A stretch of DNA of 62,610 nucleotides, filler included, from Choristocarpus tenellus KU-1152 (taxonomy: Eukaryota > Protista > Phaeophyceae): the NCBI GenBank assembly GCA_964200185.2. It is 13 parts of 13 records of this genome, joined end to end, with 100 filler letters (N's around TTAATTAATTAA, not from the genome) between each part and the next. Parts side by side here need not be neighbours in the genome. Positions count along the whole stretch, not along the records: positions 3,578 to 7,758 come from CAXNAD020015815.1; 12 more parts are not named here. One strand, written 5' to 3'. Shown here in pieces: positions 3,578 to 7,858 of this stretch. The position numbers and the translations under genes are program-made. How positions within the stretch are numbered: position 1 is the first letter of the stretch; each line of letters starts with the position of its first letter. The notes below the pieces were generated by a model. It was not told where the DNA came from and ran no database searches. It saw nothing but the letters and a program-made list of their open reading frames with translations.

Positions 3578-3690
3578 TCTCCTGGCAGCAGACTTCACCA
3601 CAGCTCCGACTCCGTCAGGCAAGGACTTGCCGTGACAGGAGGCAAAGAAGTTGTGTACTACGGAAATTTCCATCCGCTCTAAATACGCTT
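3578..3690 (-). pseudogene. Sola2-type DDD transposase fragment
   Basis: Minus strand reads MEISVVHNFFASCHGKSLPDGVGAVVKSAARR up to the contig end, matching the FFxxxHGKxxxDGxG motif. The DNA is homologous to 50258-50300. Confidence 0.7.
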
Positions 3691-5462
3691 CCTTCCATCT
3701 CTTCTAGGCCATCGCGGTTGATAAACATGGAGAGGAAGAGGTCCATCATCTGGTCCGTTTTGGATTTCTTCCATGAGCGAGCGGCACTGGTCTTGGGCAG
3801 TCTCTTGAGTGGGATTTAAGCGAGGTTACGATATGGGTTGGTGGGTTTGTTTCCCTTTGACACTCGAGTTTGATGTTGATGATGCAAACATCGGTAATGC
3901 TGCCACTTTGTTCGGACGAGGGGGCGTGCACAATATTAGGTCATGAAGTGTTTGATGGAGTAGGGCCGTGTTGGGTGATACTCAACGTTCAGCACGTCGA
4001 CATTGAGGTGTTGGATATATCGCGAACCGAAACCGCCCCGGTTAGAATATCCTGAAAAGGTGTGCCCCATGAATGCGGGCACTCGTGAGCCACATGAAAA
4101 GGTTATGAATACATCCCATGAAGCATGTAGGGCGAAGTAAATTGAGGTAGTTTGTTGTACGGCAGAGTTTGATCTGGTTTTTGTAAAACGGTTGACAAAT
4201 GTTTGGTGGGTGTCACCCCTGAAAATATTCGCATATATATGTTCTACAATTGACGTGTTCTGTCGTACGGTAAACTATTGTGTAAAATGGGTTTTTGGTG
4301 GAAGGGATACCGAACGTTTCATGTAGCTCTACATATATCCCCAGATGCACATACCATTGTTTGTGCCTCCTTCTCTGCTGGGGATATGAGACTGTGCTTG
4401 AGTTGTTGGAAAATCGAGGACGATGGATTGGATGAGTGTGCCTCTAAAAAAGTCATTATTATGTGGACCGCCGCAACTTTTGCCATACTTTGTGGTACGG
4501 TAAAGTATGCCAAGAATTACACGAGGCGAGTGGGTGAAGGAAGGGCGAAACATGTGTTGGCATAGTTTCAGGATTTTATGGGCCAGAGATGGTGTTGGGG
4601 TTGAGGCAAAGGGTTAGGGTTGGGACAGGTGTTAGGGTTGGGATTGGAATTGGAAACAGAAAGGATTATCGTTTATTTCCGATACATATTGGAGTTGACG
4701 TATTGGAGAACATGATCTTCGTCGTTAGGTTTCGTCCTGCTCTTGAGGGGAGGACGTGTGCGTCACCAGTTCCGAGCTACGGTGTAACTGGTGAACACCA
4801 CGCGTCTCTGATTTCGATGCAAATGTGTGATTTCGGAAGGATATGGAGACCATATGGTTCGCTATGTCTAGTCTTCAAGCGCTAATCCCTCGTTCCTGTA
4901 ATTACAGAATGCACAGGCTACGTTGGAGTGTGTCTACCTGCAATAGAGGCCTGGCCTTACCCTTGGGATGTCCTGGGGTCTACCCCTCTGGAGTCCACGA
5001 GTTCATTCCAGTTGTTAGCCAGATCCCCTAGTGGCTGACGGGTGGCCATCCTGCATCTGCGGTGTAATGGGTATGGTCCTCTCGAACTGACGAATCCTCT
5101 ATGTGTGTCAAGGCCCGTTGGTTTGTTGTTGAGTGAGTGAAGGAGTGTGGGGTTAGTCGCAAATGTGGTTTGGCGAAGGTTTTTTGTTATGCACCATAAT
5201 ATAACTATTCAAATTATATTACAATATATGAAATAAAGATGCAAATTAGACGTTTTGACCCTGTCGAACTAATGAAATAGAGGATGGAGAGTTGTATATA
5301 TATATACAACTGTAACTCTTTATTTGTTCTAGTTCTACGTCATCACAGTCATACATATATAAGTAAATTTCAATATATTAGCGAAGAGAGCAAAAATCCC
5401 CTTTTTAAATTCCCTATTTGATTCTCAAGAAAAAGGAACACTCGAACTAGCCTGTTTGGAAC

Positions 5463-5716
5463 GAGTGAAAGTATCTTAGAGGGTACTGGTTTTGCCTTGT
5501 TTGTCAATTTGGGGCTTGGCTTCCCATGAGTTTTTTAATGACATTTTCCTACTCCAAAATGTTTCGGATTAAGTAAAATGTATACATTATGAAAAGTTGT
5601 ATCCAGAACATGGATATTGACACTTCCTAAGAAACACAATGGCCAACATCACATCAAAATCACAGCATTGGAGTTTGGCCCCCAAATGGATGCTACCCTC
5701 TAAGATACTTTGACTC
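5463..5716 (-). mobile_element. MITE family A copy
   Basis: GAGTGAAAGTATCTTAGAGGGTA ... TACCCTCTAAGATACTTTGACTC; the flanks (GAAC/AGTC) do not form a TSD. Confidence 0.93.
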
Positions 5717-5991
5717 AGTCCCAATATAAAATAATATCTTCTGGGGGTCCAACATTCAGTAACGTCGGCTATTCTTTTATTGATTACTGTGAAATTGTTA
5801 TACAACCGATCAGCACTTCCCAATCACATTGTATTCCTTGAAGCAATTGTTCAAAGTGCACTGCACAAAGGAGACCCCCCGCTTTCGGGATACCCCACTT
5901 TTGCTTGGGGAACCCCCACTTTTGTTGGGGGAACGAACCCCCGCTGTCATATTTTTTCCCTCTTCGCGCACCTATTTTTGAAAACCTAACC

Positions 5992-6250
5992 GAGCCAACG
6001 TATCTTAAAGGGTAGGGCCGCGTCCATTTGGGGGCCAAGACCCAATGTTGAGGTTTTGATGTAATTTTGGCTATCGTGTTAGTTAGTAAGTGCCAATATC
6101 CTTATTACGGACACATCTTTTCATAACGTATACATTTTACCTACTCCTGAACAATTTGAAGTAGGAAAATGTCATTAAAAAAAAAATGGGAAGCCAAGCC
6201 CCAAATGGACAAACAGGGCAAAACTCGTACCCTCTAAGATACTCTCACTA
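5992..6250 (+). mobile_element. MITE family A copy
   Basis: GAGCCAACGTATCTTAAAGGGTA ... TACCCTCTAAGATACTCTCACTA with the full internal sequence; no clear TSD. Confidence 0.92.
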
Positions 6251-6744
6251 AAAACAAAAGAGGTCATAAAGACCATACTTTCTTGGTCAAGGGAGAATAG
6301 GTGCGTATCCCTTGTACGATGATCGAACTTGTCTGCCACTATCCCTGTGCACTGTATGTAACGGACGGCAGGACTTCTTCTCCGTGCAAGGTGATCAGGT
6401 GCGTACGACTCGAGGATGATGTAACCTGACCGCAACATACCATCCTCTCTGGACCTGACTCGATACGCAAAACATTTTCTCTCTCTCCTTCTGTAGGTTT
6501 CCCCTGTCCCATTTGCAACGTGCCCACCCGATGTAGACATCACGTGATCAAAGGAGAGGCTTAGTCCAACCACCGAACGCCGCCATGCCTCCAAAGGGAA
6601 CCAAAAGGTGAGTCCCCCTACTAGAACCGTGCGCTCTTTGTGCAGCTCATTCGGGAGCGTTTCTGAATGACCAATATCGCAAACACCATCAAGATTTAGC
6701 GCCTTTGGCGGATGTTGATGTTGCGACTTTCTTCCGTTCACATA

Positions 6745-6990
6745 GTATGTTTATAGTTTTTAATGACTTCTTTTTTGCGCTTTGTCATTTCTTTATATAA
6801 ATCACCAAGAAGTTCATAGGATCTATAACTTTCTGGATGATTTTTACTCTCTAATATCTGACTTGTCCTAATCAAGGATTCCTCTGATTTATTATGATTT
6901 TTAGATAAAGTATAAAATCTACCCAAGTGATTTAATACTTTTCCTGTTTCTATATGCGATACTCCATAGTTTTTCTCGTAGTCTAGTAAT
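6745..6990 (-). pseudogene. Bacterial-type tetratricopeptide-repeat protein fragment (Rickettsiales-like)
   Basis: LLDYEKNYGVSHIETGKVLNHLGRFYTLSKNHNKSEESLIRTSQILESKNHPESYRSYELLGDLYKEM contains two TPR-like units (YGxxHxETxxxLxxLG; HPESY..LGDLY) in AT-rich intronless DNA. Confidence 0.7.
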
Positions 6991-7059
6991 ATTACAGGCA
7001 AAGTTACTGTTGATGAAATTTTGAGCGAATTTTTTAGTGATTTCTGTATTGGAAAATAA
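6985..7059 (+). pseudogene. mnmE: 3' end of tRNA-modification GTPase MnmE/TrmE
   Basis: Reads SNITGKVTVDEILSEFFSDFCIGK-stop. The terminal ITGxxxxxEILxxIFxxFCIGK is diagnostic of MnmE. Only the last ~24 codons are present. Confidence 0.88.
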
Positions 7060-7221
7060 CTTATGATAAAAAATTACGATCGAGACATTACTCAGATAAT
7101 TAATAATTAGTAAGACTAATTTAAGTTGTCAGAGAAATTAGACATCTTTCCGAAATAATTTCCTAGACTTCAGGGTATAAAAATTGTATTTGAGAGGTTT
7201 TAACAAATCTTCAAATAAATT

Positions 7222-7473
7222 ATGACAAATTCTAAGAACTACCTAAAAACAGCTAGAGTTCTTTTGAACCTTGGTGCTAATCTAGCAATGCTAGATCCAG
7301 ATGGCTTAAATTGCTGTGAAATTGCAGAATCAATTGGTAATGCAAAATTACTAGAATTAGTAAGTCTAAGCATACCTGTAGAAATTATAATTGAAATTGA
7401 TCTTCCTCTGGATACTAAAGTACCAATTGATATTGCAGGTGAAGATCTTCCTATTACAACGGTAGAAGCTTAA
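7222..7473 (+). pseudogene. Ankyrin-repeat protein C-terminal fragment (bacterial endosymbiont-like)
   Basis: LKTARVLLNLGANLAMLDPDGLNCCEIAESIGNAKLLELV fits the ankyrin consensus (xLLxxGAxxxxxDxxGxxxLxxAxxxGN); AT-rich. Confidence 0.7.
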
Positions 7474-7858
7474 TTTACTGATCTAAATATCTACTAGCCC
7501 ACGCTGCAAGCACAGATGCAACATATCTACTATGTATTAGCATGTGGGTAACGTCATCATGTACCCAAGCGGTTGTATGACCCCGTAGTCACGACCCCTA
7601 ACCCAACCACTGTCGCATAGCGTGCCGTAGCCAACACGCCCATCTGGGGTCGAGCCTTCCTCAACAACCGGCCGTTGTTCATGATATGTAACTATGCAAA
7701 AGAGAACTCTTCCAATAGAGTCTTTGCTTTAAGTTGCATGGATTTATTTATTAGCGGANNNNNNNNNNNNNNNNNNNNNNNNNNNNNNNNNNNNNNNNNN
7801 NNTTAATTAATTAANNNNNNNNNNNNNNNNNNNNNNNNNNNNNNNNNNNNNNNNNNNN

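Follow-up and report, generated by a model that had tools for sequence, protein, structure and literature searches.

Short, scrambled pieces of an endosymbiont-derived genome can fill a chromosomal break by end-joining, as in the mosaics of nuclear mitochondrial and nuclear plastid DNA (NUMTs and NUPTs). Such inserts are truncated at both ends, lack a target-site duplication and may show a few bases of microhomology at their junctions. Bacterial endosymbionts leave comparable traces. In the nucleus of Volvox carteri, a truncated rickettsial 16S gene abuts a truncated murB gene, with no premature stops and with host repeats nearby (PMC4324946), and transfers from Wolbachia to the host nucleus are known from arthropods and nematodes (PMC4299567). 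Candidatus Megaira is common in algae and a frequent associate of both algae and ciliates. A divergent strain from a brown alga combines a G+C content of 31.75% with expanded ankyrin and tetratricopeptide repeat (TPR) gene sets (PMC10132079). The locus described here lies in a window of 62,610 nucleotides (the whole stretch of DNA, made up of 13 parts joined by filler) from the assembly GCA_964200185.2 of Choristocarpus tenellus KU-1152. The part at positions 3578-7758, derived from CAXNAD020015815.1, to which the analysis was confined, contains an AT-rich, bacterial-like block at 6741-7495, in which the truncated end of a TPR protein gene, the 3′ end of mnmE and what is probably the tail of an ankyrin-repeat gene are found together. 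It appears rather probable that this block is a genuine nuclear insertion of symbiont DNA, of the kind represented by the rickettsial inserts in Volvox and those of Wolbachia in animals.

Composition and anatomy of the block

The block at 6741-7495 is delimited by its G+C contrast and by Markov segmentation. By exact count its G+C content is 0.291, compared with 0.449 in the sequence to the left (3578-6740) and 0.479 in the sequence to the right (7496-7758), and the composition profile shows a sharp drop from ∼0.50 to 0.27-0.32 across ∼6740 to 7495. A Markov contrast over the piece 3578-7758, in which a 3-mer model of Rickettsiaceae/Megaira loci was set against a model of the flanks, returns 6751-7498 as the top bacterial-like segment with 143 bits; the runner-up, at 5198-5434, reaches 34 bits only and has no coding signal. 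The left border is located between 6741 and 6750 and the right border between 7495 and 7498.

The left part of the block, 6741-6989 on the minus strand, is a fragment of a TPR protein gene, identified by Pfam, phmmer, BLASTP and a phylogenetic tree. The open reading frame (ORF) extends on the minus strand from 7001 to 6741, and its stop codon, at 6738-6740, falls either within the host sequence or on its margin. The ORF matches the Pfam family TPR_12 with an E-value of 1.6e-6 and 28.6 bits, slightly under the gathering score of 30.1, and a phmmer search against 1.84 billion representatives yields 1272 relatives, with a best E-value of 3.5e-37. Homology starts at ORF residue 5 (nucleotide 6989). 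The best phmmer match, P0001 (296 aa), aligns by BLASTP without gaps over 83 residues at 72% identity, covering P0001 residues 179-261; the last ∼35 residues of this homologue are absent from the fragment. Amino acid identity to the nearest relatives, P0001 and P0151, amounts to 72-75%, and at the nucleotide level the fragment is 81.7% identical over 240 nt to the locus L002. The repeat units are thus recognised both by profile (TPR_12) and by homology, including the 72-75% identity and clade supports of 97/83 to 100/94 in the tree described below. Full-length relatives are proteins of 1050-1280 aa with GerE and NB-ARC domains and many TPR_12 matches, in which the matching stretch always corresponds to the last TPR units (for instance, residues 941-1003 of 1052). 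Only ∼83 of ∼1050 codons are therefore represented in the block, and the N-terminal part, which comprises more than 900 aa in the full-length relatives, is missing. The NB-ARC and GerE domains are absent, with the homology beginning at approximately residue 940 of 1052 and with the mnmE tail, on the opposite strand, lying upstream.

This mnmE tail, at 6988-7060 on the plus strand, is the 3′ end of the gene for the tRNA modification GTPase and comprises the last 23 codons, ending in FCIGK, and a TAA stop. Positions 6988-7057 encode NITGKVTVDEILSEFFSDFCIGK, and the stop codon occupies 7058-7060, such that the C-terminal C-I-G-K motif of MnmE (TrmE) forms the last residues of the product. The matches to models of the protein all run to the very end of the model: the NCBIfam equivalog NF003661 is matched at profile positions 426-448 of 448 (E 1.6e-6), TIGR00450 at 424-446 of 446 and Pfam MnmE_helical at 192-211 of 211, and the MnmE chains 9hip and 3gee in the PDB align at their exact C-termini. 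With 27.7 and 17.3 bits, the tail scores far under the whole-protein cut-offs of 380 and 252.6. Because stop codons lie in frame upstream of 6982, only a 3′ remnant of mnmE is present, and a complete MnmE, with its N-terminal folate-binding domain and G domain, is not. A search of metagenome contigs with a degenerate DNA pattern for the tail (ITGKV...EFFSDFCIGK followed by a stop) gave 0 matches.

The TPR fragment, reading leftward, and the mnmE tail, reading rightward, meet head to head at 6985-6991. The position of this junction is defined by the limits of homology on either side: the nucleotide homology to the TPR homologue L002 stops at 6988, and the MnmE profile and PDB alignments begin at 6985-6988, leaving a possible overlap of 1-5 nt between the two pieces. 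Downstream of mnmE follows an AT-rich spacer of 161 bp (7061-7221; 25% G+C), interrupted by stops in each of the three frames of the plus strand. No recognisable coding fragment was detected in the spacer by translation and a six-frame scan, and it is either the intergenic stretch that followed mnmE in the donor or another piece of DNA.

The third coding piece, at 7222-7473 on the plus strand, is an ORF of 83 codons that would encode the second half of an ankyrin repeat, a terminal repeat and an acidic/hydrophobic tail of 36 aa before the stop. In a phmmer search against the PDB, 160 chains match ORF residues 5-47, with a best E-value of 4.1e-5, and among the 60 of these chains that were listed nearly all are designed or natural ankyrin-repeat or DARPin proteins. 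The alignments span the second helix of one repeat, a loop and one full repeat, and in the DARPin alignments printed the match takes in the C-terminal capping repeat. The Pfam match to Ank_4 is weak (E 0.09; 13.6 bits versus a cut-off of 22.7), and a single-sequence AlphaFold (AF2) model, with a predicted local distance difference test (pLDDT) score of 42, is uninformative. Because an in-frame stop lies directly upstream of 7222 and the ORF opens in mid-repeat, it probably stems from the 3′ terminus of a larger ankyrin-repeat gene. The ankyrin identity, plausible from these alignments, is the least secure of the three.

No internal stops or frameshifts are present in the three coding pieces (83 + 23 + 83 codons). 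The G+C content at third codon positions (GC3) is 0.24 in the TPR piece, 0.17 in the mnmE tail and 0.14 in the ankyrin ORF, with 0.25 in the TPR homologue, and all three pieces have a donor-like composition. The gene ends in the block, two at least and probably three, are unrelated to one another. A blastn search of the whole block against plasmids returned no match, and a promoter and terminator scan of the block gave no signal above the shuffled expectation.

The anatomy deduced here agrees closely with the original prediction, made from the sequence alone. The AT-rich block of ∼750 bp had been placed at 6745-7495, which is right to within a few bases by both the G+C counts and the Markov segment. 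The proposed mosaic of a TPR fragment on the minus strand, fused near 6985-6990 to the last codons of mnmE on the plus strand, is recovered as truncated pieces on opposite strands joined at ∼6988; the TPR assignment is carried by the TPR_12, phmmer and P0001 matches, the mnmE assignment (23 codons and the stop) by the ends of the NF003661 and MnmE_helical profiles and the PDB C-termini, and the fusion point by the limits of homology and the upstream stops. Only the ankyrin-protein tail, with its 160 matching PDB chains and its weak Pfam match, is less firm than the TPR and mnmE pieces.

Relatives of the TPR fragment and the putative donor

The named close relatives of the TPR fragment are all rickettsial. 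In a tblastn search against 72,556 plasmids, the top match is a protein encoded on a plasmid of Candidatus Megaira (Megaera) polyxenophila (48% identity, E 6e-16), which is matched at residues 955-1029 of 1080; next are plasmids of the Holosporales symbiont Paracaedimonas, with 37-39% identity. A scan of one genome per GTDB species, queried with an alignment of four close sequences, revealed a single relative, a protein of 1054 aa in a Rickettsiaceae metagenome-assembled genome (MAG; locus L003). Its identity is 60% over the whole TPR fragment and 75% over 65 aa, and its contig has a G+C content of 26-31%. The nearest relative, P0001/P0151, lies on a metagenomic contig of 30% G+C and adjoins an IS982-family transposase that is 93.9% identical to a copy on a Megaira polyxenophila plasmid; this plasmid comes from the alga Cryptomonas gyropyrenoidosa.

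A maximum-likelihood tree was calculated from the 40 best TPR segments and six named sequences; its 83 columns permit shallow resolution only. The TPR piece of the window groups with P0151/P0001 with ultrafast bootstrap (UFboot) and Shimodaira-Hasegawa-like approximate likelihood-ratio test (SH-aLRT) supports of 99/93. This group lies inside a clade of six rows that includes the Rickettsiaceae MAG (100/94), and a clade of eight rows adds the Megaira polyxenophila plasmid protein (97/83). The sequences of Paracaedimonas, Neochlamydia and cyanobacteria fall outside the eight-row clade, leaving the Candidatus Megaira plasmid and the Rickettsiaceae MAG as the only named members of the clade. Another member adjoins conjugative tra genes. 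From the genomic settings of its members, the TPR gene family appears to travel as cargo on plasmids and integrative elements of Rickettsiaceae. This mobility somewhat weakens its worth as a taxonomic marker, yet every named close relative is rickettsial.

The donor is most likely a previously undescribed member of the Rickettsiaceae, related to Megaira and clearly distinct from the sampled lineages. The G+C content and the ankyrin/TPR content of the Megaira strain from a brown alga, mentioned above, fit the block without being evidence of identity. A metagenome search with the mnmE tail (24 residues) and protein, plasmid and metagenome searches with the ankyrin tail (83 residues) gave no taxon-informative relatives. 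The origin from a Rickettsiales-like endosymbiont that had been predicted is thus borne out, close to Megaira, by the TPR piece, with its clade supports and the IS982 neighbour of its nearest relative.

In several Rickettsiaceae-like contigs (L002 1201-2658; L003 187-4304; L004 1135-5267; L009 151-10557), a small ORF recurs behind the large GerE/NB-ARC/TPR gene, and next to it comes a divergent gene for an S24-peptidase/helix-turn-helix (LexA-like) protein; in one case the GerE/NB-ARC/TPR gene lies beside a conjugative tra cluster. The arrangement suggests that mobile elements of rickettsiae carry a conserved cargo module of STAND-NTPase architecture. The contig of L003, CAMDPW010000049.1, bears the title 'Rickettsia typhi isolate ZH-03apr19-290'; its isolate code suggests an environmental sample, and the Rickettsia typhi label looks like a taxonomy placeholder rather than a true R. 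typhi.

Age and origin of the block

The substitution pattern bears on the age of the block. Between the TPR piece and its homologue in L002, dS is ∼0.90 and dN ∼0.155, giving a dN/dS of 0.17. With these values nearly all of the divergence would have accrued under purifying selection in bacteria, and the low dN/dS together with the lack of internal stops implies that the piece has spent little time as neutral or dead DNA. The DNA would therefore have left a living bacterium recently. The dS of ∼0.9 and the divergence from all relatives also indicate that the donor lineage is distinct from any that has been sampled. The block is most likely non-functional, a dead scrap that would preserve, as a molecular fossil, the trace of an infection that is recent or still present.

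If the block is a nuclear insertion, its formation may be envisaged as follows. Symbionts would lyse in the host cell and release their DNA, which would then be captured during the repair of a chromosomal double-strand break, by analogy with NUMTs, NUPTs and Wolbachia inserts. The captured pieces, all presumably from a single donor, would become mosaic filler, consisting of the inverted TPR end, the mnmE 3′ end with downstream DNA and the tail of the ankyrin gene. The TPR end would stem from a GerE/NB-ARC/TPR protein borne on a mobile element. In the assembly the block is enclosed on both sides by flanks of 45-48% G+C with MITE-like (miniature inverted-repeat transposable element-like) repeats and no bacterial signal, an arrangement consistent with integration into host DNA. 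The joins of block and flanks are known from one assembly alone, and we regard their existence, and nuclear integration, as reasonably probable.

Several observations weigh against this interpretation. The piece is only 4.2 kb long, with 263 bp of host-like sequence to the right of the block, and a search of public assemblies for the exact products of four ORFs of the contig found no match and no second assembly of the junctions. The lack of decay and of G+C amelioration suits a recent insertion and an artefact from a live symbiont equally. Natural homologues of the ankyrin ORF were found neither in protein searches nor in tblastn searches of plasmids and phages, nor in viral contigs or a metagenome scan. 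In addition, the donor assignment derives from one piece of 83 aa of a plasmid- and IS-borne repeat family that can move between bacteria residing in the same host; as to the genus Megaira, the sole piece that could be placed is this mobile-element TPR fragment, the mnmE tail of 24 aa being too short for placement.

An alternative that retains some plausibility, unlikely as it is, holds that the mosaic pre-existed in a decayed donor region rich in insertion sequences (IS) and plasmids, from which one contiguous 755-bp piece was inserted. The surroundings of the TPR relatives, which adjoin IS982 transposases and conjugative tra genes and occur on Megaira plasmids, are of the expected kind, and rearranged copies of the gene do exist: P0001 (296 aa) is a shortened copy of a protein of ∼1050 aa and lies next to a transposase, and split TPR ORFs are found on a Megaira plasmid. 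Mobile-element-rich Rickettsiaceae are, moreover, generally known to hold many gene fragments. However, no donor genome with such an arrangement was found, the metagenome and genome scans were null for the mnmE tail and the ankyrin ORF, and since mnmE is normally single-copy, a remnant of 23 codons would require a prior partial duplication. As regards scrambling on entry versus scrambling in the donor, neither is preferred here, since the data cannot decide between them.

A little less likely again is an artefact, in which DNA of a live, co-sequenced symbiont became attached to host DNA, either in chimeric library molecules such as those that whole-genome amplification can generate or through mis-assembly. 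In favour of this, the pieces show full integrity and no amelioration, as expected of DNA from a bacterium that is still alive; in addition, the contig is short, public assemblies yielded no independent version of the junctions, and inverted head-to-head joins such as that at 6985-6991 are, as a rule, typical of amplification chimeras. An artefact is nevertheless judged less likely than a genuine insertion, because it needs three or four false joins within 755 bp (two between host and bacterium and one or two internal), each of which must have reached the consensus, and because block and flanks share no repeat that could mislead an assembler, only chance matches of 14-16 nt. Nor would a living bacterium be expected to have an mnmE of only 23 codons, except where this is what remains of a duplicate.

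An origin from an AT-rich giant virus, phage or organelle genome is very improbable. Giant viruses are AT-rich, have many genes for ankyrin and TPR proteins and become endogenous in the genomes of algae and amoebae, but searches of 2.9 million viral contigs and of 50,697 phage records turned up no relative of the TPR or ankyrin piece, and a search of PHROGs gave noise only. The TPR piece nests among Rickettsiaceae sequences, and mnmE is a bacterial housekeeping gene; on the placement of the TPR piece and the lack of viral and phage relatives, this origin was rejected. Still more improbable, and likewise rejected, is derivation from the host's own genes (an organelle-targeted MnmE/GTPBP3 homologue, TPR or ankyrin genes, or decayed copies of these), for even though a CIGK-type motif is also found at the end of mitochondrial MnmE homologues in eukaryotes and both repeat types are common in eukaryotes, the 29% G+C and GC3 of 0.14-0.24 are far from those of the flanks, just 23 mnmE codons are fused to an inverted TPR piece, and that piece is 82% identical in DNA to a Megaira-like contig.

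A genuine nuclear insertion of symbiont DNA is accordingly the preferred explanation of the block. A more specific version, in which the integration was very recent and came from an unsequenced lineage of the Megaira clade, can be put forward only tentatively, and on balance is doubtful; it draws on the best protein match of 72-75% among 15 billion sequences and on the dS of ∼0.9, and supposes a host lineage from which Rickettsiales may not yet have been recorded. If correct, the scrap would be the first evidence of such an association, and by following it as a marker through different strains the infection could be dated. More generally, a genuine insertion would mean that a eukaryote harbours, or recently harboured, a Megaira-like symbiont lineage that is absent from public genome collections, and it would add to the short list of nuclear transfers from Rickettsiaceae to protists and algae, of which that in Volvox carteri is the documented one. 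As the block has no predicted function and the event class is well known, its value is that of a natural-history marker rather than of new biology. In practical terms, the block marks the assembly as one that may contain symbiont contigs and additional inserts, and its junctions are ready for the polymerase chain reaction (PCR) in a survey of strains.

Flanking DNA and comparison with known inserts

The flanks look like eukaryotic non-coding DNA. They contain no Pfam domain in any open frame, no long genuine ORF, and no tRNA or Rfam match, and these scans gave no assignment to a taxon, algal or other. To the left of the block, outside the insert, lie two copies of a MITE-like element, identified by their inverted repeats and by alignment: copy A at 5464-5715 on the plus strand and copy B at 6000-6249, in inverted orientation, on the minus strand. 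The copies are ∼255-270 bp each, 84-86% identical and ∼300 bp apart; the inverted pair that they form covers 236 nt with 84% complementarity, and the mean column identity in their alignment is 86%. The terminal inverted repeats of copy A are located at 5455-5485 and 5694-5724. Copy B ends ∼490 bp before the block, in agreement with the two host copies, the nearer one ∼500 bp upstream, that had been predicted.

Taken at their outer limits (5455-5724 and 6000-6258), the two elements show terminal inverted repeats of ∼30 nt of the TTTGGAACGAGTGAAAGTATCTTAGAGGGTA type, and between them a unit of 21 bp is present in two copies at 5893-5934. Just to the left of copy A lies a second AT-rich stretch (5198-5434; 26-32% G+C), which has no ORF and no Pfam signal and gave no match to plasmids by blastn. 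This stretch may belong to the normal AT-rich DNA of the host or be a further non-coding scrap. At 4591-4643 lies a short and degenerate array that resembles a telomere, with AGGGTT units within an 18-bp period; it may be an interstitial remnant of the TTAGGG type. At 6586-6614, an ATG in a GCCGCC-ATG context precedes 23 nt of open frame (MPPKGTK), after which comes GTGAGT; together these look like a candidate first exon and splice donor. If so, the block would lie inside the first intron of a host gene or just within that gene. At the edges of the piece, an open frame on the minus strand (3578-3697) is cut by the left edge and ends in ...HNFFASCHGKSLPDGVGAVVKSAARR, with no Pfam match; its HGK..DG.G motif presumably resembles uncharacterised eukaryotic transposon-associated proteins. 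The last 80 bases at the right edge (7678-7758) are AT-rich, with 26% G+C, and are likewise cut.

When compared with its intact counterparts, the GerE/NB-ARC/TPR (STAND-like) proteins of ∼1050-1280 aa on Candidatus Megaira plasmids and Rickettsiaceae mobile elements, the TPR fragment matches their last TPR units with 48-75% identity and nests among them. It differs in that the block holds ∼83 of ∼1050 codons and neither NB-ARC nor GerE domain, and it is thus a remnant and not a functional member of the family.

Among known inserts, the one in Volvox carteri consists, as the block probably does, of DNA of Megaira-group Rickettsiaceae in a eukaryotic nuclear genome; both have truncated, abutting genes free of frameshifts and premature stops and host repeats close by or inside, and the Volvox insert has likewise been read as the trace of a past infection (PMC4324946). 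It differs in being ∼9 kb in length, in containing four syntenic genes and in having been verified by PCR across strains (PMC4324946), whereas the block described here measures 0.75 kb, consists of non-syntenic pieces on opposite strands and is known from an assembly alone. The Wolbachia transfers would be similar in that they bring Rickettsiales DNA into a host chromosome, are mostly non-functional and often fragmented or rearranged, and commonly come to notice as AT-rich sequence of bacterial type within a host contig, for which assembly artefacts must be excluded. They differ in the donor family (Anaplasmataceae), in their animal hosts and in the far larger size of many inserts. By analogy with the mosaics of organelle origin, the patchwork of short, truncated pieces of mixed orientation looks like the filler DNA of end-joining repair, with the difference that in NUMTs and NUPTs the donor is an organelle and here a facultative bacterium. 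The class of event is thus already known; the donor lineage, and possibly the host, may be new.

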